This document shows positions 6,939 to 55,992 of a stretch of 64,000 nucleotides of DNA, piece after piece. Numbering within the stretch: the stretch's first letter is position 1; every line of letters starts with the position of its first letter. Where the stretch lies: the NCBI GenBank assembly GCA_002189035.1, contig NEEC01000013.1:558001-622000 (forward strand). The letters are read 5' to 3'. Below the pieces are notes generated by a model. That model ran no database searches, was not told the origin of the DNA, and saw only the letters and a list, made by a program, of their open reading frames with translations. A program made the position numbers and the translations under genes. This stretch comes from Utricularia gibba. Its lineage: Eukaryota > Plantae > Magnoliophyta.

Positions 6939-9237
6939 CTATTATTTAACAATCCATAGCATACCTTCAAAGTTTTTCATAAATCTCGAAAATCTATGTA
7001 ATAAATGTCTCCGAATCCTTAGAAATGTCCCTAGATGAAGTACAATTTATCTTTTACCTTCGGGAGACAATTGGACTCCTCTTCTCCACTCAAAGTAATG
7101 ATGGTTTGAAGTTCACTTATCTACCTTGCATTTAAATGGTAAAATATGCTTATATCAAGATTATTCATCCAATACAAGGAATCTACTATAAGCACAATAC
7201 TTCTATCATTCTATTTCCAACATCGAATTCATTGTTCATCACCAACTAGAATCTATGAGTCATATAATCAACACACTTTCTTGAAGCTAGAAGCACAACA
7301 TTTACCACAACATCAATTCACAATTGTCCATGTTTATTGAATCATGTGCAAATTCTAGGATGAAAAAAATGACTACCATGAAGAAGAAAAGGAAATTTGA
7401 TTATATTGTCATTGATAATAGGAAGATTTGACATTTGGTACTCTAATCTAATTAATAAAGAAAAAATAAAGTAAAGTAAATAATGCCTATATATATGACT
7501 AGTGAAAGGCCAAACTAGTTTCTTGAAGATCTCAAACACACTTATGAGATCTATATACCAAAGGATAGTAGTTCATCTTAAATTGCATCATTTTTTTTTT
7601 AGTTTCAGCAATATGTAAACATCTTTGAAGAAACTGTGCATCTATTTTTAATTCATCTCGGTTTCATATTCCACGTGTAATGGCATATCAAACGAAATAT
7701 TTCTTTGATCTTACCTCTTATTTTCATTAAAATGTAAAAATGATTAAAGTTCTCATCACCCTTTATAAGCCACTAGTTTAAATTGTTGACAATATATGTT
7801 TGTGATAGAAAATATATTTCCTATATTTTTATATTTTTTATTTAAATTAATATTGTAGGATATTCAATTAGTTCTAGTTTTTATTATAATTGTTTGTATA
7901 ATAACGACTCAAAAGAAGACTATCATCTATTATTTTACAAGAGAAAAAGAGAAGATAATAAGGAAAATATTATAATCATTTACATGGCTTCTAATATCCT
8001 TGATGTGTGTTCAAAGTAGCAAACATCAAATCTAACATTTGAATAAGAAATAAATGGATAATATGAATTGAAGTATGAAGGAATATAATCTTAAGAAGAA
8101 ATTTAGGATTGCAACCTCTAATATGGAAGTATCTGAGTAATGAAAGACATGATGTTTATAAAGCATACTCTTCTCAAAAAACCATCAAAGGCATTTTTAT
8201 TATTCATGGTTTAGCAAGTTATTTTTCTAGGATGGAATATTGAGAAAATAAATATAGTGTATGTTGCCTTTTTGTTATTTTTTTACTAAATAAAAGAATT
8301 AAATTGATAATGATGTCTTCACAATTCATAGCTTTTAAAATTGGAAAAAGTGAATAATGGAAAAATTATTATTTTCTTACTCATATAGGAACTAATCCTT
8401 GTTGACAACATAATAATGCACTAAAATCTTGTTGTGCATTGTCGGATTTGTTGAATAATGAATACCGGATATGGAGAATTAGAAGATGATTGAAATAATC
8501 TTAAGTTGCAATATCATGATTGGTATGATTAGATATCTACAAGACTTCATTTGATAAGAAAGGATTCAATTGAAACTTAAGTTTGTGATATTTTGTTTTG
8601 GATGTATCCCAAATTGCTATGTTGTAAAAGATAGACATTCTAATAGAATTTTATCATTTTATGGTTGAAACAAATTGACATTGTATGTTCAATTTGATTG
8701 ATCTCTATTATAATTACTTGTGATACTTCCAACTATTACAACTTGTTTCAACATCAAATTTCTGTACTGAAAGCAAATAAAATAAGATTACGAAATAAGG
8801 TGGAAAATGGTTTTTTGTTAATTGTACTCTCGTGAATATTGAAGGTGAACTTATAAAGAAATACACATATGATAATATCATCAATGACTTCAAAATGTTC
8901 ATGATTGCTGAAAGAAGTTGCAAAACTTTTCATGATTCATCTATGTATTGATGAAACCAAAGGGATATAGTTCAGAATCTCTATTTTCTGATTGAAGTAT
9001 GATGAGATAATTATAAAAATAAATCTCTTTTCAATCTCTCGCACTTATATCTATTTCAATGTTGGATAGCAAAAATCTATCAATTCTACTCTTTTTTGTT
9101 TAAAAAATATATACGATTTCAAATTTCTTCTTTGTAGATGTAGATCTTTTAGTCTCTAGGAAACTCCTCATGGTTTACATCACTTATATTTCCCCCAATT
9201 TGAATTCATAAAAACCATAAGCATATATAGTTTTCCC

Positions 9238-9450
9238 TAGAGGTGGATTCGGTTCCGAACCGTACGGTTTCGTTTCCAAACCGAAAGGTTCCAACGAACC
9301 GTCGGTTCCAAAACCGTGGTTCACTGTAGACAACGGTTCCGGTTTCGGTTCGAAACCGTACGGACGAAACCTTGAACCGAACCGAAACCGGAACCGTACG
9401 GACGGTTTTGGTTCAGAACCGGAACCGAACCATAACTGGAACCGATCGGT
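9238..9450. repeat. Left TIR and subterminal repeat array of the hAT element
   Basis: Dense AACCG/CGGTT/GAACC repeats in both orientations directly after the TIR, as in Ac/Ds-type subterminal regions. Confidence 0.9.
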
Positions 9451-10000
9451 TACTGTTTATAGGTGTTTTCGGACACCCATATGAATCATTGTGGGTGTCT
9501 GGCAGTGAAATTTATAATAATAATTATTTTTTTATATTTAAATATTATCAAACAATATATTTAATAATATTAATTTTTGTATTTAACTAGATATATTATG
9601 TAATCTACTATATTAATTTATAAAAAGCTATAACTTAAATTAATTGATAGACTATCTCAATAAAATATAATTAAAATCAATATAATTTATGACTTAAATA
9701 AATGAAATAAATAATGAAATTATTAGTATTTGAATGTATATTTGATAAAATTAAATTTTTTAAAACAAATACAACAAGATTACAAATTATATAAAATGAA
9801 TAGAATTATTATTTATATATTTATTTTTTTAAAATGAAGATGTTTATATAGTTGTTTTATATAATCTTTTGTAAGTATTGTGTATTTTTCAAATTAAAAT
9901 AAAACAACATCTATTTCATATATTTTGGAAACAAAATATTAGAAGGATTAAATACATTGCATTTTCAAAATTAACATCACATATTTCACATCTCTTAATA

Positions 10001-10190
10001 ATCGTTAAGGGTGTCCAGGCTCCAGAGAAGATCCAGGCACCCTCAATAACGGATCAGAGTGTCTGGACAACCTCTAACCATAATCCTAATTTTAAAGTGC
10101 GTGCTGTCTTCGTTAAGAGTGTCCAGACTCTAGAGAAGATCTCAGGCACCCTGAATAATGGATCAGAGTGCCTGGACGACCTCGAACGAC
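10001..10190. repeat. Two about 110-bp-period tandem units each containing the CCAGGCACCC...GAGTGTCTGG palindrome
   Basis: Units start at about 10001 and 10111 (CGTTAAG(G/A)GTGTCCAG(G/A)CTC(C/T)AGAGAAGATC..CAGGCACCCT). Confidence 0.85.
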
Positions 10191-10430
10191 ATTCCTTATT
10201 CTGAGGCTCACGCTGCCAAGGCATTAGAGGCACCCTTAGAAATCATTATATATCTCCCAAATGAATTTAAAGGATCACTATTCACTAGAGCATATTTCAC
10301 ACGATGCATATGGGAATTCAACGAATGTAACACTAACAACAACATAATTGTCGACTAGAAAAAAAGTCATCAACAAAAATATTTCAACTACAACATAAGT
10401 GTTCAAAATAACTAATATTAGAGGCTTCCT

Positions 10431-12689
10431 TTAACAATCTTGTAGGCATGCATAATACTCCCATAAGGCATGTCCCTCACGTATGGGAGGCTGTCCTATT
10501 TGGTTCTCATTAACATAACTTGGAACATCATGAGTATATCGTAATCCTTCAAGGAAAGTCCGCATCTCACCATCAACATTTAATGATGCATCATCCCTAT
10601 TAGTATGCGAATAGGGACTTGGAAAAACAGCATTATTTTCCTGAAAAATTAATGGTTAGTTTTGATGTATAACCAAGTGTATGGTAGAGTAGAAAAGCTA
10701 AAATGACTTACCGGATTTTTCATTGACTTGTGAGGCGAATCATCAATCAATAAGGTGTTGTGACAGCCATATCTTGAGTTTAATCCATTGTTGACATCCC
10801 ATACACGACTCAACTCCTTCATATAGACTGTGTTGCTAGGATTGCTGTGAACACGTACACCCGTATTCGTAGTCATCGTTTGATCCCAAACAAAAATGAG
10901 TTTATCAAATAATGAAGGTGGAAAGACCCATTTAGTGATTGCTTGTAGGTGCTCCCTACAAAATAAATCAATTGCAAGAATTGGCACCATTCTAAATACC
11001 AACCAAAAAAAAAAGTAACATACGTACCCACCACGGGATGACCATAAGGCTACATCAAAATTATCTATACACCCTAATAAAGTCACGAGCATATGGACGT
11101 AGAAAGACTGCATAAATTACACTAAATAAGTGTTGTTTTAATACCTGATCGGCCATATATAATTTTATTTGGAGGATTTGTGACCTTGACGGTCCAGCCC
11201 TATACACGATGTCTGCGAGCACACCATTGACATCCAAGATTATCAGCTTTCGTTGAGGCTCAGAGGCACTCAAAGAGGGTCCGGTATTGCCCAATGGCTC
11301 TCATACCAATCCAACTTAGAGTGAAGCTCTTCATTTTCCTTTGTTATAAATTCAAGTCTCTCATCTACATCATTGAGACCACGTGTGAGCTCGTCCCCTT
11401 CAACATCATTACTTTCTTGTGTCCTCTCATTCTTAGACAAATCTTCATTCTTTTGGGATACTCTAGGATTCTTCAATACACTACACTAATAACGTTTTGT
11501 CCCCGGTGCATCCACAAATTATGGTAAAATGTCAATAAAACTCTTTTGCATACTGGAGAAAAGGAGTATAAGATCTTGTACATCCCTCTTGTGCAAGGTA
11601 TCAAATCCTACAATAAAAAAAGATTAATTAACAATAGATTCAACAAAAATATTCAATAAAAATATTAAATATGAGTTATTTCGACAAGTCTAAACTAAAA
11701 AGCAATAAATTAAATACACATATTCAAAAAGAGTATTGAAAAAAAATATTCAATAACACTAAACTGTATAAATATATACTCAATAAGAAAAGATTAAAAA
11801 ATATTCAATAAAAATATTCAATAATGATAGATTGAATAAAAATAGATAGAAAAGTATTCAATAAGAATAATTGAATAAAAATACATTGAAAAAAAAATCT
11901 CTAAAAAATAATGAATAAGAACAGAATAAAAAAATTAACAAACAAATTTAATTAGATTAGATCGAATAAAAGTAAAATCTGAAAAATTTTCAATAAAAAC
12001 AAGATTTAATAAGATTAACTTCACTAAAAATATTTAATAACAATAGAATTAATAAAAGTAGATTAAAAAACGTTCAATTATAATACATTCAATAAAAACC
12101 TTCAATACAAATATTCATTAAAAATATTCCATATTTTTATTCATATTTCTTATAGTAATACAATGAAAGATTTACCTTTTGTCTTGCATACTTCACTCGA
12201 ATTAGGATGCATTTGAGGAAATCTCGTTTCCATTGGAGGACGTATCCAAACAAAGCTTGTCCACCATTCCTCAAATCCTCTTCTCACGTCTGTCACTAGT
12301 ACCAACTCTTTTTTCCCCTTTAGTGTGTAGTGGTTCTTGTTTGGAATCCTAGAGCATACACTCACAGCAAAAAAATAACGAAGTTCCACCTCAAGAGATA
12401 ACTCCTCACAAATACTCACAAAAGCTAACACATATGAGATAGATCTTGGAGTTAAATGAGATAATGGAATTGCTAAACATTCTAATATTTCTTCTAAAAA
12501 GGGCAACAATGGTAAGCGTAAACCTCAACGAAAATGTTCCGTGCTTAAGGCAAATCCCATTGGACCCACACGGTTTGGAATTTCACTCTCAATCAACTCA
12601 TTTGGTTCTTTGTCCCAAATCTCATACTCATCCGGTATCAAGAATCTAGTTCTCAATTTTTCAGAAGTATATATCTACAAAACACCCAT
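10431..12689 (-). pseudogene. Spliced cargo gene: Transposase_28-like domain + coiled-coil + NIF/FCP1-like HAD phosphatase domain (about 500 aa reconstructed, disrupted)
   Basis: Exons 12674-12176, 11607-11145, 11107-11028, 10955-10712 and 10640-10431 with GT-AG introns. N-terminus: LRTRFLIPDEYEI...GLRLPLLPFLEEILECLAIPLSHLTPRSISYVLAFVSICEEL...WWTSFVWIR. C-terminus: RKLIILDVNGVLADIV...VFLRPYARDF...FDVALWSSR...LIFVWDQ...NTLLIDDSPHKSMKNPENNAVFP...IGQPPI..GHALWEYY. Stops at 12525, 11519 and 11486 (plus TAG at 12675-12677 if the ATG at 12689 is the start); frameshifts near 11297, 11180 and 11070. Confidence 0.85.
11640..12120. repeat. Degenerate short-motif array (TTCAATAA / TTGAATAA) in the 568-bp intron of the cargo gene
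   Basis: Eight exact TCAATAA copies between 11650 and 12100, plus several TTGAATAA/GAATAA variants. Confidence 0.65.
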
Positions 12690-13159
12690 AGGTATTGTAT
12701 AAAAAATCAAACTACAATAATTGGACAAGGTATTTCAATTTGGAACACAGATTAGCAACCATGATGGAAAATAAATCACATACCTTGTTTAATTTAAACA
12801 ACACTCCAAGTAGGTGGTGGGACTGTGGGGGCGTTCGGTCGCTTTCGGCTGGGGGGGCATGGGGGAAAGAGGTAAGAAAATTTTCTTACCGGATGGGTGG
12901 GGATTAGGGTTGTCTTAATTGTCAACGTGGGGAGTGGGTAAAGTGGGGACTGGGGTGGTGATGTGTAGCGCTATGTATGGGTGCGTGAAGAGTTGGTTTA
13001 ATTATCGAAATCATTAGGTAATGATTACGTGCAATATGTCTCTAGGTTCATCGGTTGTCAGTAATTATTTTTGTTGATTTCCAATGAGAAGTGTCGCTCG
13101 CTTGAATCGATCCGAACCCACTGTGTAATTTTTTTGGAAATGCTGTTTAATTACTCCAA

Positions 13160-13860
13160 TTTTGAGGCACCAGAGTCGCTAATGTGGGTGCCTCCGTCAC
13201 CCGTAAAATTATATTTTCTAGGCACCCGTACCCTAATATTTGGGAATTGCGCAATTTTAAAAGAAGACTTAATTTTCAAAAATATACCATTGTTTTCGTG
13301 CATTAATTGGATTATAAGAAATTGAAAATGAAATTTTTTCATATATCCTAAATATTACAAAAAAAATTAAATGGCATGTTAATTAAACATTGAAATAAAA
13401 TTTTAGTAAATAAAAAATTTTCATGTGTCGTTTAGACCATCTTCCAGACACCTACATTGTATCGTGTGGGTGTTTGGAAAGAGACTAGGATTCCCTTTTC
13501 CAAGCACTCACAATGCCTCGCGTGAGTGTCTGGGAAGACTAGGCGAGACCATTTTCAGGCACCCATATTTGCACATGTGGGTATCTGGGAGTGTGCAATC
13601 ATATTCCAGGCACTCTATTTTTAGGAACGATAAGGATCGAGTCCATTATTTATTTGACTTAAAAATATTGCACTCTATACGTACGTTTTCTAAGGATCGA
13701 ATATTAGTGTATAATAAAAAAGTGCACTCTATATTTAGGAACGATAAGGATCGAGTGTATTATTTATTTGACTTGAAAATATTAAACTCTATCCTTATGT
13801 TCGATCCGTATGAGTGCAACCCTATTCCAGGCACCCACATTTGCGCATGTGGGTGTCTGG
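13160..13860. repeat. Array of palindromic units TTCCAGGCACCCACA-N8-TGTGGGTGTCTGG between the cargo gene and the transposase
   Basis: Units at about 13163, 13442, 13498, 13552, 13604 and 13824. The period is about 55 bp in the core. The unit at 13604 is followed by a 114-bp-period tandem duplication (13611 and 13725). Confidence 0.88.
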
Positions 13861-13985
13861 TAAGGATGCATCCAAACGTTTTGGTAAGTGCTCAGATCAT
13901 ATAATTTTAATGAAAGGCATGAATACAACGTACTTCATCTTCATACAAAGTAATAGTACTTCATGAAGCACACAATGTTATCAAA

Positions 13986-16083
13986 TTAGGAGTCTTCAAC
14001 TTCATCTTCACTTGAACTTGAGGATAATGTTTGATTTTTTTTCAATGATTCTAGCCAATCCTTTAGACAAATGCATGCCTCCAGGGTCTCTACGTTCAAC
14101 TTGGACCGCTTGTGATTAAGAACTCGTCCCCCTGCACTAAACGCACTTTCGGATGCCACTATACATGCTGAAGTTGTTAGAAGATCTTTGGCCATTCTAG
14201 CCAAGATAGAGTATGTAGTAGAATTTGTCTTCCACCAACCCAATATATTAAAGTTGTCATCATCAACACCCTCAACAATAGGAGTATTATTGTAAAGTGT
14301 AATTTGATCAACAGAATTTAATGAAGATGATAAAGAGGATGACACAAATGAGCTATGTTTTCTACGAATAATGTCCATCAGATTGCGACTGCCAAACATC
14401 GAATTATTACATGTTTTAAGAATAGGAACACTAAGATCACTATATTTAGAAGCATAAAGGGAATATTTAGCATGTAAAATGTTGTTAGCATCAACATCTA
14501 TTTCTTCACAATTTTTAATGGAAAAAGCAACATCATCTACACTAAATGACTACGAAATGCATTCAAGTAATGTTTTCACACCTCTAGATTTAACCCGAGG
14601 ATTCAAAATAGGTGCAATAAGAAACAAATGTGGGATTTCATCAAAATATTTCATATTTTTCATATTTCGCACTACATCCACCAAAAAATCACAATCAGTT
14701 TGATGATCATAAAAAGCAAACGAAATTTTACAAATACATGAAATCACAAGTTGAGAAGTTGGATAATAAATACCACTCAAAATTTTAGTACAAGAATAAA
14801 ATGTTTCTAGTAAATTTACTAAACCTCTTATTTTTTCAAAAATAGAATGAGTCAAGAAATTGAAACCTGTAAAAGATTCACAAAATTGAATAAGAACATT
14901 TTCATAAGGAATCAAAAATTGTTACATATCATATATAGAATTCCATCTAGTTGGACAATCATTTTTAAATTTTCGATAACAGATATTTCTTTTTGACAAA
15001 TCCTCTTAAAATCATCTCTTTTGTTAGGTGTAGTTCTAATCATACCCACTAAATCATGAATAGGAGTTAAAAAAATTTCACATTCTTTTAAACCATTTTG
15101 AATACACAAATTTAAGATATGACAAGTGCATCTAGTGTGGAAAAAAATGCTATTCAATATAGGATTCATGCTACTTTTCAAAATATCAATAGCATTTGTA
15201 TTTGCATAGGCATTATCCAAAGAAATAGAAAAAATCCTATCAGATATTCCATAAAATGCTGTGACCTTTTCAATGATTTTAGCAATAGAAAAACCATTAT
15301 TTGGTGATGGCCATTCTTGAAAAGCTAAAATTCGTTTTTGCATACACCAAGAATTATCTACCCAAGAACATGTAATAACAATATAACTCTCATTGTTACA
15401 ACCTTTCTAACCATTACAAGTCAAACAAAAATTACATTGTAGAGATTTAAAAGTAGAAATTAAAGAGTCACGCATGTTTTTAAAATCCTCAAGTGCCATA
15501 TGATGCACGGTTTTCCTGGAAAAATTTTTGTATCCCAATTGAGCTTGTTTCAACATATCATTAAAAGAAGATTTTTCAACTAATGAAAAAAGAAGTTCAT
15601 TAAGTATCAAATAACACACCACACTTACTTGAAAAAGTTTATAATTAAAAATAAAATTAGATAATCCCACACTATTATCACCCCTAAACATAATCTAGTT
15701 TGACGAAACTGTGGTAATTTATCATTATGCTTCTCCCTAACATGCCTCTTATATGTACCGGTTCCCCAACCCTTTTTGAAAGTATACTCTTAACCACAAT
15801 GTTTACAAGAAATTTTTTCGGGATTAGAAACAACAAAATGCTCTCCAACATCCAAAGAATCATCACTAGAATTTTTTGATCTTTTACGAAAAAGGAGACT
15901 CGATGAGGTTGAAGAACCCACTTCTCGAGGACTAGAAAAATCATCATGTTCGGGTAAGGGACCACATTCAAGTTCTTGTAAAAATTGAAGGCCTTCCCCA
16001 AAAGAAAATTCTCTATTATTTTCAAAAACACAAGGTATAGTAGAATCAGATTGAGAAGAATTTTGTAAACCAGACCTCTCCAT
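13986..16083 (-). pseudogene. hAT (Ac/Tam3/RICESLEEPER-like) transposase, disrupted
   Basis: BED finger ISCKHCG*EYTFKKGWGTGTYKRHVREKH; SISLDNAYAN; HTRCTCHILNLCIQ (CxxH); DUF4413-like IYYPTSQL...AFYDH; C-terminal dimerisation domain FNILGWWK...ILARMAKDLL...ASESAFSAGGRVL. Several stops and frameshifts. Confidence 0.95.
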
Positions 16084-16811
16084 GTTGTAAAAAATAAAAA
16101 AAAACCTGTTACCCTGCAGGCCTCATCAATGTCTCCAAGTGGAAATTTGAAACTTGATACTTCAGAGTATCTCCAATCACGAGTTGTATGCAGAAGCTGC
16201 AATAGAATTATTTCTAGTAATGAGTGATGAGATAATAAGAAAAAGTAATGGAAAACTATAAGACAGCCATATCATATATATAGATAATTTTTTTTATTAA
16301 ATTAATAGCAACGGATACTTTCAAATCCATGTGCAACTCCACAGTATGCACAATCACAAATGCATGTACTAGCCGTTGAGATTAATATATACATAAAAAA
16401 TATATTTTAAATATGATGCTGCCACGGCAATCTTCACATGAGTATTTTAAATATATATTTATGTTTAAATATGCATTGTACTACAAATATGGATAAATTA
16501 GAGATATTGGCAACGCATAACTAGTTATTGAGAAAACTATGTAGGTAATGAAATGTTAAAATATTTATTTGGTTGAACTATCGAAATTATTCAATAAATT
16601 TGTGTAATTTAGTATTTTTCTATTGAGGTTATACATTTTATATTTATTAATTTCATTCTAATTTTATAATTTATAGTATATAAATAAATGAAATAAATTA
16701 TTAAAGTGATAAAATTATCAGTAATTGAAAACATATACAATAAAATTACATTTTTTCAGACACCAACATTAGTTTGTGAGTGTTCAGGAAGAACATCTGA
16801 AAGATAGAGAC

Positions 16812-16968
16812 CATTCCCTGGCCACCCGCATTTAATCATGCCTCATGTAAGAGTGTCATGAGGGTGGCTGAGATCATTTTCCAGGCACCCACATCTATTG
16901 TCAGTGTGTCTGGGAAGGAGTGTTTCAGAAGATTTTCTAGGCACCCACTTCCATCGTATGGTGTCTGA
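16812..16968. repeat. Three further palindromic CCAGGCACCC units near the right end of the hAT
   Basis: Units at about 16815 (diverged), 16878 and 16935, about 60-bp period; same consensus as 13442-13860. Confidence 0.8.
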
Positions 16969-17046
16969 AATCATATACATTTATTTATTTATTTATTTAT
17001 TTAATTTTTTAATTTTTTTCTAATTTTTTAATTTTTTAATTTTTTT

Positions 17047-17240
17047 CGGTTCCGAACCGTGTACAGTACGGTTCATACACGGGTCAGAACCGTCGGTTCC
17101 ACGGTTCCAAATTTGCCGAATCGAACCGAAACTGTATGGTTCCGGTTCCGGAACTAGAACCGTACGAACATCCACCTCTTGAAACCAAACTGGAACCGGA
17201 ACCGGAACCGCGGTTCCAGTTCGAACCGAATCCACCTCTA
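17047..17240. repeat. Right subterminal repeat array and TIR of the hAT element
   Basis: Dense GAACC/AACCG/CGGTT repeats ending in GAACCGAATCCACCTCTA. Confidence 0.9.
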
Positions 17241-19997
17241 GTTTTTCCTATTTTATCAACCTCTTTAAGTATTGTCCCTTTTTAGCATTACTCAAATTTG
17301 AATGTTGATTTTTATTACTTTCATCGAAAATAAACAAGATTACATTATTATGATGATGAAGCCTCATTATTTTTACAAAATCATCATGATTTTCGTCTTC
17401 TTAATCTATTGGGAGTGAAATCCTATTATCTCCACCCTCATTTCATATCTCATTTGTCTAAGCATGCTCAATGCAAGTATATTGACCAATTCTTTTTCTT
17501 CAATCTTAGCTCCTTTGTTTTTGCTTAAAGCCATGCTTCTTTTTTTTTTTTTTTTTTGAAGATTTTGTTGTCCTTTTACAATTTTTCTTAATGATATTTG
17601 TTTTTAGTTTAAAATTTTTCGTGTATCTACTCCCCTCTAATAAATAAAAATTTTCAATTCATTGCAAGATATTAAATTTTTTATATCAAATAAAATTTAT
17701 AAAGTCCTAATGCATATGAATGAACAAATCCCCATAAAAATGTCAATGGCTTCAGAACGAATTCAAAAAACTAAGTACTTGTTGTGCTGAAGCGCATGCA
17801 TTCTGGTATCAAATTCAATTTAGTATTAGCTAATAATATCATGGCTTCAATAATAATTATAAAAAAAAAGACAATAGAGTTCTAATTCCAATTGATAGAA
17901 CAAAACTAGAATACCTTGAAGTTTTAGTAATGGAATGCTCACTCAACTCATGGTCCCAAAATACTTATACATGCTCTCATCTTAAATGAACCAAATCATT
18001 TCTCTTGATTTCAACTTAGCATCTTGTATCATGCTCTCACATTTGCAAATCTGAAACCAAATCAACGATCCGTTGCATTCCGTCTTCCCGAAACAAAGAC
18101 ATTTGTAATAATCTCAATGCGTTGGAGAGCTATCCAGATCTTCAGAAAAAGACATTGTATGTTCATTTATTCTTGCCTTCTTCGAATCCTCTTATTTTCT
18201 TTAACAATATTCACAAGCAATTTGTTAAAGCCAAGGATTTGTGAATCAGACAAGCACATGTATGAAGTTCAAATTGGTAAAAAACATTAATCACATTTAA
18301 AAAGATTTAACTCAATCAATTACAAGCAGTCCACAATATCTTGTATATGTATATCACTTAATGTTTTTTTTATATGAGGCTACTTGCTCTAATACCCGCT
18401 TTTAAGTTGAATTGACATTAATTAGGTTAATATTTTTTTTGGTTATTATAAGTATTGCTCAATTTATAGATAAATTTTATTATTATCATATAAACCTAAT
18501 GTATGACCTTGCTTTTTTTTAATCGAAACTCATAACAGCACATAAGGTCCATCTTAGCCACCTAAGTTTTAAGTCAAATGTTCTAATATTATGTTGAAAT
18601 AAAAAATCTGATGGATCGGACAATCACATTTGAAAAAATTAAAACTAATCAATTATTAATGATTTATAATCTCTTACATATTAATCATATTATTTTAATT
18701 TTTTGATATTAATTATTTTTTTTAACAATTCCAATGTACTTCAAGCCTTCGTTTTTCTTAGCAAATGAATGAATGCAAAAAAGTAACATTCTCATGTTGG
18801 CAATCCCTCCAAGGTGGGAGGGTGTACGGACGATCGGAAAGAGGCTTAGGATGGATGCTCGGTTAGGTGAGGGTTTTTCCCCTTATTATTCACTTGGAAA
18901 AGTACCTTTTCTATTTTTTTAAATAACCAAATATCATATGTTATTTCCTTGTAATTTTGTGATTAATTTAAACTTTGAAATTAATAAAATCACAATATAA
19001 AGCTATAAAACTATAAAGAGTGAACGAACTCTGAAAATCAAATTTCAAAATTTTTATGTTGTATTTTACTATTTTTTATCATCTGTAGAAACGGCTACTC
19101 TTCTTGTGATGGTTACTTAGGTTTTGTAAACATGGCACATAAAACTAACAAATTTTCGTCACCTCTCTTGGCCGAAATTTCGCCCAAACCGCACAACTCA
19201 AATCCGAATGACGAATCCGGAAAATGAGTTTAAGCTTTTTTGGGTCGCATGATTAGAAAAGTACCTCGTCCCCACCCACGCATTCCGCGTAGGGTCCGAG
19301 CATATAGCTTTTCTTCCTCCAACCAAAGCAAAGCGAGCTCCCCACGACCACTACGGCTACACGCAATTGGCTCGCAGATGATTGTCGTCCAAAAAAATAA
19401 AGAAACCCCTTAGTGGGCATCAACTTTTGTAGCAGATAGCAGCATCCCCCCACTCACCTCTCCAGATATTTTGGGTTTTCACTTCCTAGTTACTTTCATT
19501 ACCGCTCACACTCTACGAAGTTTAAGAGTGCGGTAATAAACCGGATCTCGTACAGGCGTTGACAGGAGGGAGTCTCGACTCTCGCACCCCCCTGGTGTTG
19601 TGCTAGGCTTGGGGGGTCCAAGTGTTTTAGGGAAAGAAGAAAAACCCATGGGCCCCGACGAAAAGGCAATGTTGCTTTCCACAAGACACTGGGAATCCTC
19701 TGTTCACACTTCATCTTCGGCCAACATTCCAACGTTAACATTCCATTGGTTAACCCTCAAACCCAATTGTAGTACGTGTTTTGTATTCTAGAAGTGAAAG
19801 AATAATGTATCTAACCAATTTATCGACGGCCGTGCATTGTGTATAGGGAAAAAAACAATAGCCACAAGAAAAAGAATAACATACAGAATTTGAACATATA
19901 TTTTGGCCCAAATGAAATTCCGTGGAATTCGAAGTCCACAGGAGAATCTAACTTCCTTCATAAAAAGCCTTGAGCTTCACACAACTTCCTTGGGCGA

Positions 19998-48100: not shown

Positions 48101-51100
48101 TCATAGCAGAAAACATATGCAACTTCATATGATCCTTGCCATTTGGATCTTAATTTTCAAGGAAAAACTTTCAAAGTGGTATCATATAAAATTTTCAAAA
48201 TACTTACTCTCATGGAAGTATTTTACCTTCTCCTTGTAGATCAAGTGATTAGAGTAGGCATTCAAGTGGATCTCCTCTAATTCATTCAAATCCAGTAGTA
48301 TCTTTTCTCTAGTTTGATCGCTAACCAGCTTTATGATGAATCTTCAATGGAGGGTGGCAAGACTTAATATAGATCATCCGAAAAGGAGACATTTAAATGG
48401 GATTTTTGTATGATGTACAATAGGCCCATAATGGATCATTCAACCCGAGGCTCTAGCCTCTTCTGTTCGAATTCACCATTTGTTTTAGAATGCATTTGAT
48501 CTCTCAATTTTAGTTCTTGGCCTACCCATTTATATGAGGATGCTTAGCTATAGAAAGACAATGATGAACTCCGAATTTTGTTAGCATGGCCAAAATAAGA
48601 ATCTTGGGATAACAAAAACTGGGAAAAATGTGAGAAGTTAGGAGATAATTTACAGTCCTGTTGTCATCTTTCTCACATGCCATAGTTTCCACCCACTTGG
48701 AAACATAATCAACAGCAAGAAAGATATAGGTCTTTCTCTTTAACGGGGGGAAAGGTCTCATAAAGTCAATCTCCAATCATCAAAAATCTCGCACATCACA
48801 ATAGTTGAAGTGGCATTTGATCCTTGAAACCTATGCCTCCACCTCTTTGGAAATTAGGGCATGCCTTGCAATGAACATATGCATCTTGAAAAAGTGTGAA
48901 CCAATAAAATTCAGCCTCAAAGACTTTGTTAGCTATGACCTTTGGACCAAAATGCCCCACATAGGGTAAGTCATGAAAATGAGTAAGAATAAAGCTCACT
49001 CTATGAGGGATGCACCAACAAAGGATTTGGTCAGGTCCAATGATGCTTGTCGTTTCCACAACAAATTTTAATATTTTTTTTTTAAAACTCATAAAACACA
49101 AAAGCGTAATACGGGTGTCGAACACAGGGAGTTGTTTTTGAGTGAAAGGTAAGGTACACAGAATACAACTGTCACGATTTGTAAATGGTTTTGAAAGTAA
49201 AAAGGTGTGAGAAACGTTAATGATGAAACTTGAGTAAGGTAATAAGAGGGGTTTGAACAGACAACAGAAATAAACGTAAGCGATGAACCTTAAATAAAGT
49301 AAATGTTCCTAGGATTGGAATCCTGTCCAGCTATGTTCGTTGCGCCTTCACTCTTCTCCGGTCTTCTCGAGTTCTCGGTTATAGGAGTAAGGAATTGCCT
49401 ACCCACCGTTACACTCTCTTGCAAGAACGCATGGGAATAGCCCCATGTTGCTCCTCCTTGGATGAATGTGAGAATAAGAGGTCCTGCTAGCGTACCCTCA
49501 TGGCCGAATTGCGCACGTGTGCCCGAGTGTTGCCAATAACTCAATGAGTCCAGATACGAGGTCACTACCTGTCCATTGATCCTGAGGTACGGCCATAGAC
49601 AAAACATTGTCTACCTCCTACCAAAAGGGCTCGAGTTGGTGCTTTCCACCTTGCTCCTCTCCAAAATCCGAGGGTAGTGATCAGCTAACCATGAACCTTG
49701 AATAAGGGGACTGTTACAGAAAGACTACAACATAGTCGTGCGAAGACATACGAAACTCATTCGGATTCAAAGAAGAGATGAAGATAAGCTAACGAAACAT
49801 AGATTTGGGAGTGTTCCAACCCAGAAACGGAAGTCTCTAGCCGTGAACGACTATACAAACTAAAGAAAACTAAATAAGGTTCTAGAGAAAAGCTAAAGGA
49901 GAGTTCCTCTAGAGAGAGAAAACAAAGTCTAAACTAAAACTGAAAGTAAAACTCTCAGCTTGTCTCAACATAAGTGAACTTCAATGAGAGTGTGAGCTTT
50001 CGTGTCCCTGTGATTCTGCTGAACTTGGGATGACTTGCAAGCAAATGTCTGCTCTGACTCTCGTACGCTAATGATGTCTCCTATCAAAGACTCTCGTGTT
50101 CCGTATGTCAAGGCTCATGATTAGGTGTATGCAGTCTTTCGTAAATCAAGGGAATGTTGGCTCGGGAAGATTCAATTTGTTGCCATTTGATGCCCTCTTT
50201 CTCTCACTTACTGCCATGTGTGCACCTCTAGAAAAACTCAATTGAAACTAGTAAAATTAATAGATAAAATACAAGATTTAGGATAATTACCCTAAACTAG
50301 ATAAAAACCTAAATCTCATATTATAGACTCCTAATTAGACACTTTTAATCATAATAAGCATAAAATCAACCTAGGAAATAGTAAGAAAATGACACTTAAC
50401 ATCCAATCTCTCATAGGTATGAGTCACCCCAAACGTAGTGAATGCTATCACTCCGCAATGTCTCCTTTTGATAATGCTAGAAGTCCTCCGAGAACTGTCC
50501 TATTGCAAGAAAATTCACAATGTCTATATAAAAGGGGGTTCTGTTATGAATCATGAATAAGTGCTCATCATGGAAGTTGTTGTTAATGGGGCTGGATGCT
50601 TCTTCATAGGTGATGTAGTTAAGGTGATCTACAACTAAATTCTCACATTCCTTCTTATCTCGGATTTCTATATCAAACTCCTGGAGCAATAGGATCCATT
50701 GGATATAACGAGATTTGGAATCCTTTTTGTTTAGGAGATATCTCAATGCTGCATGATCGAAGTAAACAATGATCTTGGCTCCAAGCAAGTAGGGTCTGAA
50801 TTTTTCCAAGGCAAAGATGATGAAAAAAAGCTCCTTCTCTATTGTTTTGTAATTCCTTTGGGCATCATCCAAGAACTTTGAGACATAGTAGATCACGTGT
50901 GATCCCTTCTCCATCTTTTGTCTAAGGACTGCTCCTAATGTTACATCACTACTTTCACATATTAACTTAAAAGGCAAATCCCAATTAGGTGGCTAAACTC
51001 TTTGAGATCTACACTTGTACTAAACTTATTTGTGTTTTATATTTTTTCTAATTAAAATTCATTGAAGAAATTACACGCAACACCCTTGATGGCATCTAAA

Positions 51101-55295: not shown

Positions 55296-55681
55296 CTACA
55301 TCCACACGGGTGGAGGTTCATTCAAGTCGATCGGCAGCCCCGGGTAGAAAATTCGAGGTAGTCTGGAGGCGGCGTTGTCCCGGCAGCTTCGGGCGGCGGC
55401 GTGTGAGTCTCATTCGCGTGTGCGCGGAGGAACTGGTTAATCATCAAGGAATGATCGGAGGGGAGATTCAGATCCAGAGACGGCGGCGGGAAGTTGGTCT
55501 TGGCCTTGGCCCCACGTAGGGACCTCGCGGCGCCGTCGTACGCCAGCGCGGCTTCCTCCGGCGTGTCGAAGGTCCCGAGCCAAACGCGCGTCTTCTTCCA
55601 CGGGTCCCGTATCTCCGCCGCGTACCGACCCCAAGGCCGCTTCCTCACGCCGCGGTAGTGTGCCTCACGCGCCGAGTTCAT
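55296..55681 (-). CDS. ERF12-like: AP2/ERF group VIII repressor, ERF12-like; as written it stops at 55322 (119 aa) because of a 1-bp frameshift, and would be 128 aa if repaired
   Basis: [73 protein letters not shown]. The shifted frame gives [14 protein letters not shown], matching the ERF12-type C-terminal EAR motif. Confidence 0.93.
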
Positions 55682-55906
55682 CGGCAAAACAAAACAAAAG
55701 AACCAGGAAAGAGAAACTGGTAGCTGCTTTGCCTCTGTTCCCCAGAGAGAGAGAGAGGGAGAGAAGATGGAAGAAAAGAAAAGATCGTGGGGGGTGGCCG
55801 AGCGGTAAACAGAGAGCAGGAGCTTTAAAGGAGGAGTGGGGGCGAAGTGGGGCCCGCGCAGTGAGAGCCCGCCCGTAATCGTCGGCTGGTGGACGGCGGA
55901 GGAAGC

Positions 55907-55992
55907 AGCCGCCCTTTGCAGGGGGCAGGGGTAGCGGCGGTAAAATGGACCATTGGAGGCGGGGACCGCTCTCACTCACTGGGCCGCCGCCG
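55907..55992. promoter_or_regulatory. GCC boxes upstream of the ERF gene
   Basis: AGCCGCC at 55907-55913 and GCCGCCGCC near 55983-55991. A TTTAAAG TATA-like element is near 55825. Confidence 0.45.

Follow-up and report, generated by a model that had tools for sequence, protein, structure and literature searches.

Structure of the two-gene hAT element

The 64-kb stretch of Utricularia gibba DNA analyzed here (NEEC01000013.1, positions 558,001-622,000; hereafter the window) contains at window positions 9238-17240 a DNA transposon of 8,003 bp, which accounts for 12.5% of the window and carries, in addition to a transposase gene, a second spliced gene (hereafter the cargo gene) and arrays of a repeat with dyad symmetry. 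The element is bounded by perfect terminal inverted repeats (TIRs) of 18-19 nt (the pair 9237-9255/17223-17241 is 100% complementary over 19 nt) and by a target-site duplication (TSD) of 8 bp that matches at seven of its eight positions, a combination that is the signature of hAT elements. The TSD, the TIRs and the domains of the transposase all place the element in the hAT superfamily. An earlier, sequence-only reading had described a single TIR/TSD-bounded unit with two co-oriented genes, and the ends, the duplication and the minus-strand position of both genes bear this out. GC content and repeats split the element into distinct blocks, of which the ends, the subterminal regions and the genes are as follows:

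9230-9237: left TSD, GTTTTCCC, matching 17241-17248 at 7/8 positions
9238-9255, plus strand: left TIR, starting with TAGAGGTGG, 100% complementary to the right end
9256-9460: left subterminal region with dense CGGTTC/GAACCG hexamers, presumed to be of the transposase-binding type
10434-12861, minus strand: cargo gene of six exons, encoding a TRP28 domain, an acidic/coiled linker and then a NIF/FCP1-like HAD domain
13989-16083, minus strand: hAT transposase pseudogene with a BED-like CxxC..HxxxxH motif, a DCPTRWNS block and a hAT dimerisation domain
17041-17222: right subterminal region with CGGTTC/GAACCG hexamers, found by hexamer scan
17223-17240, minus strand: right TIR, pairing with the left end
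17241-17248: right TSD, GTTTTTCC, 7/8 identical to GTTTTCCC over 8 bp

The dimerisation domain of the transposase was matched by Pfam (PF05699, E = 8e-23), together with a weak hAT RNase-H-like match below the cut-off (PF14372, E = 5.7e-5). In the databases the transposase is closest to BED-hAT genes from other eudicots: with tblastn, BED/ZBED1_RNase-like hAT genes of Rhodiola were matched at E-values of 1e-18 to 1e-30, and a word-indexed protein search with the C-terminus found at most 57% identity, mostly in Rhodiola, Rhododendron and Prunus. Within 10 kb on either side of two Rhodiola hAT loci (30-51% identity) we found no cargo homologue, no cluster of dyad half-sites and no matching termini, but these loci are too distant to be informative. 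The transposase reading frame is interrupted by four in-frame stops (15790-15792, 15407-15409, 14922-14924 and 14550-14552) and is shifted at least twice, near 15690 and near 15005; the cargo gene has three stops (12525-12527, 11519-11521 and 11486-11488) and two or more frameshifts, near 11287 and near 11070. The copy is dead, as had been noted from the sequence, with both genes damaged. The element at 9238-17240 is one of many copies of a two-gene hAT family and is old and inactive.

With its 8-bp target duplication and BED-hAT transposase, the element is similar to the Dart/Tip100-type hATs of plants, and its start, TAGAGGTGG, presumably resembles the terminus of rice Dart. hAT elements are textbook one-gene transposons. 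In the Dart/Tip100-type elements the transposase is the sole encoded gene, whereas the element at 9238-17240 has two.

The cargo gene

The exons of the cargo gene and the two parts of the gene with unusual composition are located as follows:

About 12783-12861, 12176-12674, 11146-11605, ~11020-11112, 10712-10957 and 10434-10640, minus strand: cargo exons, with GT..AG borders readable in the sequence
11606-12175, minus strand: cargo intron, an AT-rich minisatellite (TRF) with the core TATTCAATAA and periods of 13, 26 and 53, which fills the 570-nt intron
12783-13000, minus strand: pyrimidine-rich (G-rich on the plus strand) leader/first-exon region, with a GC skew of +0.31 to +0.38

The large second exon encodes Transposase_28 (PF04195, hereafter TRP28), whose score of 31.9 bits exceeds the cut-off of 26.2 (E = 1.5e-7). 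Atlas language-model features for this exon agreed at 0.96, and the nearest neighbours were all TRP28. For two separate exons of the cargo gene the Atlas features indicated NIF (0.92/200 and 0.90/192), and the HAD-type domain has ILDVNGV as motif I and LLIDDSP as motif IV. From these sequence features the C-terminal part of the predicted protein is accepted as NIF/FCP1-like, but not as an active phosphatase.

Close relatives of the cargo protein were not found. A HMMER scan with the TRP28 exon returned 10 distant matches, the best with 43% identity over 50 aa, none of which (0/10) had NIF; a protein database search with a NIF piece found no relative; and PDB sequence searches with the NIF pieces found nothing relevant. 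There is no TRP28 homologue elsewhere in the 64-kb window. Pfam gave just Transposase_28 and a weak NIF, with no PMD or PPP-type domain, and the cargo protein has no homology to VANC. The fold search with a model of the TRP28 exon gave no match in the Swiss-Prot AFDB and linked the exon neither to PMD proteins nor to a DNA-binding fold.

In the leader region, 12800-13000 has many GGGG runs on the plus strand (C-rich on the sense strand of the cargo gene) and is among the deepest-covered bins in one of the DNA runs described below, while other copies of the family have 1-nt length variants at 12858/12860. This stretch could be a pyrimidine-rich core promoter/5' untranslated region or a G-quadruplex-prone stretch.

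The cargo gene belongs to the family

Four public DNA runs of this organism (X1, X2, X6 and X7) supplied contigs, which were placed on 9238-15237 at an identity of at least 80%. Across the four runs 184, 648, 2410 and 3414 contigs were placed, with identities ranging from more than 99% to less than 90%, and these numbers and this spread show that the family is large and old; its cargo exons, arrays and transposase are each multi-copy. In X6 the cargo exons were covered about 680-1630 deep and the transposase exons 700-1660, and the depth of the cargo exons was 3-6 times that of the arrays or the intron. As word depth does not measure copy number, the comparison is indicative only. At 12525-12527 the other contigs nearly all have a sense codon in place of the stop (X6 depth 690/711), and at 11287, exactly where the reading frame of the cargo gene changes, most of them are one base longer or shorter. 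Both defects are thus private to the copy at 9238-17240. Taken together, the depth of the exons and the private defects answer the question, raised from the sequence, of whether the cargo is confined to one copy: it is not, and the cargo gene is a family gene rather than a one-off capture.

Contigs of 94-95% identity bridge the 5' region of the cargo gene and the arrays (12703-13413) as well as the arrays and the 3' end of the transposase gene (13385-14011), so that the order of parts is the same in other copies. The length of the arrays and of the intron repeat varies between copies, as seen in joints such as 13170->13529 and 11776->12026, among others, and at array position 13583 other copies have the canonical letter of the motif where the copy at 9238-17240 is mutated. 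A contig with a loose end at 9282, in which an identical terminus lies beside a different flank, represents another insertion and indicates that the family was mobile. Among the differences between the copy at 9238-17240 and its relatives, C>T and G>A prevail (302 and 308, respectively, of some 1,200 variable positions in X6), and this excess is the deamination signature of methylated cytosines in a long-silenced family. The anatomy of the element and the family-wide status of its cargo gene are solid.

Two classes of cis-repeat

The element has two classes of cis-repeat that are spatially separate: subterminal hexamers and internal dyad units. CGGTTC/GAACCG occurs 30 times in the window, 27 times in the element and 26 times in its subterminal regions of ~200 nt. 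Subterminal DNA is the usual location of the repeats to which hAT transposases bind. The hexamers have no similarity to the half-site of the dyad units. Each dyad unit is 36-48 nt long and consists of two arms of 11-17 nt, CCAGGCACCCACAT and ATGTGGGTGTCTGG, separated by a loop of 6-13 nt; about 14 copies can be aligned. The units and the repeats between and beside them are located as follows:

9467-9502: dyad unit U01, a single copy amid CGGTTC repeats, with repeat, alignment and folding evidence
10005-10222: 109-nt direct repeat in two copies, with a diverged dyad unit in each copy, 210-430 nt downstream of the cargo stop
13150-13262: degenerate dyad units U04-U05, from the unit alignment
13430-13654: tandem array of about four 56-nt units with dyads U06-U09, upstream of the cargo gene
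13610-13801: unrelated 78-nt direct repeat in 2-3 copies between dyad units, with 88% identity and a TRF period of 60
13813-13870: best-preserved dyad unit, U10, with a 14-bp stem (-28.5 kcal/mol), ~120 nt downstream of the transposase stop
16745-16980: dyad units U11-U14, an array of about four units of ~56 nt each, located 660-900 nt 5' of the transposase ATG
16979-17047: A/T microsatellite, ATTT/ATTTTTTA, from a tandem-repeat scan

The half-site CAGGCACCCAC, with at most 2 mismatches, was found 20 times in the window, compared to an expectation of 4.46 +/- 1.95, and 17 of these occurrences are inside the element. The palindrome is not dispersed through the remaining 56 kb of the window; the sequence-only reading had named its occurrence across the genome, independent of the family, as a threat to its own proposal. 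All 17 half-sites of the element fall in three non-coding blocks, which lie 3' of the cargo gene (9461-10433), between the two genes (12901-13988) and 5' of the transposase gene (16084-17040), and none is in the exons, the introns or the subterminal regions. Each of the two genes has dyads on both its upstream and its downstream side. The units are arranged in tandem, with a period of 56 nt at 13430-13654 and 16745-16980 and of 109 nt at 10005-10222. Compared to shuffled sequence, the dyad hairpins have z-scores of -3 to -5.9, and in the unit at 13501-13532 both arms have changed (CACTCAC/GTGAGTG) with the pairing of the dyad kept.

The distribution of the palindrome agrees in part with what had been read from the sequence. 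Its presence in every non-coding block holds for the three internal blocks, while the left end has a single unit only (9467-9502). The palindrome 3' of the cargo gene was recovered as two units at 10019-10185, although these are diverged variants within the 109-nt repeat. The second array of a short motif, in the cargo intron, was confirmed as the TATTCAATAA minisatellite: at up to 1 mismatch, 12 of the 35 matches to TATTCAATAA in the window are at 11650-12121.

No credible Rfam family was found for the dyad units. Metagenome matches to a 16-nt half-unit, at 120 or more single-match loci, were attributed to chance, as none of the 120 examined was similar to the element in DNA or protein. The 78-nt repeat at 13610-13801 starts directly after a half-unit, CCAGGCACTC, that lacks the second arm. 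Two AT-rich stretches of 79 nt near opposite ends of the element (9689-9767 and 16684-16762) are 73% alike, in direct rather than inverted orientation.

Possible roles of the dyad arrays and the cargo protein

A dimeric, element-specific regulator of the two genes fits best with the dyad symmetry of the units, their confinement to the non-coding DNA that flanks the genes and their separation from the subterminal repeats. We propose that the dyad arrays may be binding sites of a dimeric, element-specific protein that is encoded by the element itself, and that this protein, when bound, would let the family recognise and transcriptionally regulate its own copies in trans. Foremost among the candidates would be the cargo protein, with TRP28 as its DNA-recognition part, and its C-terminal domain (CTD)-phosphatase-like domain would act on the transcription machinery or on a chromatin-bound substrate. 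We regard this regulator reading as possible rather than probable, and its narrower forms as less so. Binding of the arrays by the cargo protein itself is rather unlikely. That TRP28 is a previously unrecognised DNA-binding module, which reads the dyad arrays and brings the CTD-phosphatase-like domain to the chromatin of the element to sustain transcription despite silencing, is improbable, and so is anti-silencing in the sense of VANC, which would be a subset of the cases in which the cargo protein binds. The sequence-only reading had TRP28 binding the motifs and the phosphatase-like domain acting on polymerase or chromatin, with anti-silencing as the result; this chain of events is proposed by analogy only.

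Several observations weigh against a regulator encoded by the element. Common descent alone would place the cargo gene and the arrays together in one family, so that their co-occurrence gives no independent evidence of function. The array bins are the shallowest of all (183-485 in X6), and the arrays are no better kept than the other non-coding parts. Tandem repeats are common in the non-coding DNA of transposons without having a known function. An AlphaFold model of the TRP28 exon (pLDDT 69, pTM 0.60) had no fold match with E<1 in the PDB or the Swiss-Prot AFDB, although a missing match is weak evidence when the model is of medium confidence. On the one cargo exon tested, NIF (PF03031) scored 13.3 bits against a cut-off of 21.8, with a value of 0.066. 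The DxDx(T/V) motif of the HAD-type domain reads D-V-N-G-V at 11220-11234, where the second Asp is replaced by Asn; this makes catalysis doubtful, while the Asn may be private to the copy at 9238-17240. The support for DNA binding by TRP28 comes from a sequence-based predictor in one paper (PMC11963269).

The strongest alternative, itself somewhat doubtful, is that the arrays are ordinary, fast-evolving tandem repeats produced by slippage or unequal exchange, or enhancer sites for host transcription factors, and have nothing to do with the cargo protein. In this case an ancestor would have had arrays flanking the transposase gene on both sides, and acquisition of the cargo gene would have split one of these blocks. 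The 56- and 109-nt organisation and the differences in copy number, such as the joint 13170->13529, are what slippage yields; the shallow coverage of the arrays gives no sign of extra conservation; the intron minisatellite indicates that the element gathers repeats regardless; and internal tandem arrays of unknown function are frequent in plant transposons (PMC11963269 and references therein). Against this, most units have retained their dyad symmetry, among them that at 13501-13532 with its change in both arms, no copies of the units lie in the 56 kb outside the element, and strict exclusion from the subterminal regions together with a position beside both genes suggests use rather than accident. 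Taken separately, functionless tandem repeats are unlikely but remain a serious contender, and sites for host factors are quite unlikely.

A second alternative is that the arrays are secondary sites of the transposase, which would serve as a regulator of its own family, with the cargo protein having some other role or none. In a preprint, transposases are reported as intrinsic sequence-specific transcriptional regulators of cognate copies (bioRxiv 10.64898/2026.08.24.746577), and the transposase of the element has a BED-like finger. A typical hAT set of subterminal CGGTTC/GAACCG hexamers, unlike the dyad half-site, is already present, however. The two distant Rhodiola hAT relatives, which are without arrays or cargo, do not discriminate between the readings. 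Given these observations, we consider binding of the arrays by the transposase to have a low probability, and the transposase alternative as a whole is hardly likely either.

It is likewise of low probability that the cargo is a passenger gene, which was acquired once, hitch-hikes on the element in the manner of Pack-type transduplication and brings no benefit. The copy at 9238-17240 is thoroughly broken, and the cargo protein has no close relatives in public protein sets, both of which are consistent with a passenger. However, the cargo gene is family-wide, its stop at 12525-12527 and frameshift near 11287 are private, its exons are kept at 80% identity or more far more often than its intron, and its N-terminal domain is transposon-specific rather than derived from a host gene (PMC11963269). 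The multi-copy exons, the private defects and this transposon-specific domain do not fit a Pack-type captured host gene, which would be restricted to one or a few copies.

Finally, it is very improbable that the units act as hairpins of RNA or single-stranded DNA (structures at transcript ends or sources of small RNAs) rather than as duplex sites: folding energies of -13 to -28.5 kcal/mol make the hairpins stable, the plus strand folds better in 9 of 11 units and G:T exceed A:C pairs on that strand (38 vs. 21), but Dicer substrates usually have longer stems than these of 11-14 bp, Rfam gave no match, the better-folding strand runs antisense to both genes, and about nine of the G:T pairs represent one inherited position, without which the counts are 29 vs. 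21. The plus-strand bias, being mostly this one inherited position, was given no weight.

Comparison with known accessory systems

VANC proteins of Arabidopsis are accessory proteins of DNA transposons that bind tandem motifs in the non-coding DNA of their own elements and lift silencing (PMC5735166). Similar to VANDAL21 and its VANC21, the element at 9238-17240 has a non-transposase protein and a family-specific motif that has accumulated in tandem in non-coding DNA (PMC5735166); of the features of a VANC-type system, such a motif in the non-coding DNA of the element was found. The VANDAL21 repeats are in upstream regions and introns, and their number varies between related copies, as it does here (PMC5735166). 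VANDAL21 is, however, a Mutator-like element (MULE) with a protein of the VANC family, whereas the element of U. gibba is a hAT with TRP28 and a NIF-like domain, and the VANDAL21 motif is 9 nt long and in one orientation, in contrast to the dyad of 36-48 nt. Binding and hypomethylation have been demonstrated for VANC, while the system described here is known from its sequence.

TnpA, an accessory protein encoded by En/Spm (CACTA) elements, binds sites that recur in the non-coding DNA of these elements, some of them as inverted pairs, and counteracts inactivation linked to methylation. The 12-bp motif arrays of TnpA are subterminal and part of transposition, whereas the dyads of the U. gibba element are internal and apart from the hexamers, and TnpA and the cargo protein have no homology. 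Spm TnpA is reported as transposase-derived in the preprint cited above (bioRxiv 10.64898/2026.08.24.746577).

TRP28 is a near-universal domain of the antisense open reading frames (ORFs) of Retand retrotransposons, where it is predicted to bind DNA and adjoins family-specific tandem arrays; its proposed role is regulatory DNA binding (PMC11963269). As in Retand (PMC11963269), PF04195 in the element at 9238-17240 is carried by a mobile element and has family-specific tandem arrays beside it. In Retand, however, the ORF is antisense and lies between pol and the 3' long terminal repeat (LTR) of a Ty3/gypsy element, while the cargo gene is in a hAT, co-oriented with the transposase gene and spliced. 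In the cargo protein TRP28 is moreover fused to a HAD/NIF-like domain, unlike in the Retand antisense ORFs. The PMD-PP7 modules (MAIN/MAIL1 with PP7L, and the MAIL3 fusion), which are linked to transposon silencing and gene expression, share with the cargo protein the pairing of a transposon-derived domain with a phosphatase-type domain (PMC7156037). The families differ, TRP28 not being PMD and HAD/NIF not being PPP, and PMD-PP7 proteins are encoded by host genes rather than by transposon-borne cargo. The element at 9238-17240 is thus outside the VANC, PMD-PP7 and Retand antisense ORF groups and resembles them in architecture only.

In the open-access literature we found no description of a TRP28 or NIF-like gene in a DNA transposon, or of an accessory gene in a hAT. 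With a large hAT family that keeps a second, spliced gene and a second class of cis-repeat, hAT would join CACTA, MULE/VANDAL and PIF as a superfamily with accessory proteins. Nearly all Retand elements that were active recently contain TRP28, which has no known function, and the dyad arrays are a concrete candidate for its ligand. If the regulator reading were true, TRP28, a hallmark of Retand retrotransposons, would have a function, and the cargo protein would parallel the PMD-PP7 proteins of hosts, in which a phosphatase accompanies a domain derived from a transposon; binding together with de-repression would make it a second, convergent system of sequence-specific anti-silencing. If it were not true, a clean description of a two-gene hAT family would still stand. 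We consider the functional claim a good testable hypothesis rather than a result.

Other features of the window

The remainder of the 64-kb window contains no further copy or fragment of the transposase gene, the cargo gene or the arrays. An ORF at 50480-50977 on the minus strand encodes a reverse-transcriptase RNase H-like domain (PF17917, E = 3e-31) and is a fragment of an LTR retrotransposon. Another ORF at 55325-55975, also on the minus strand, encodes an AP2 domain (PF00847, E = 1.5e-14) and is probably a gene for an AP2/ERF transcription factor.

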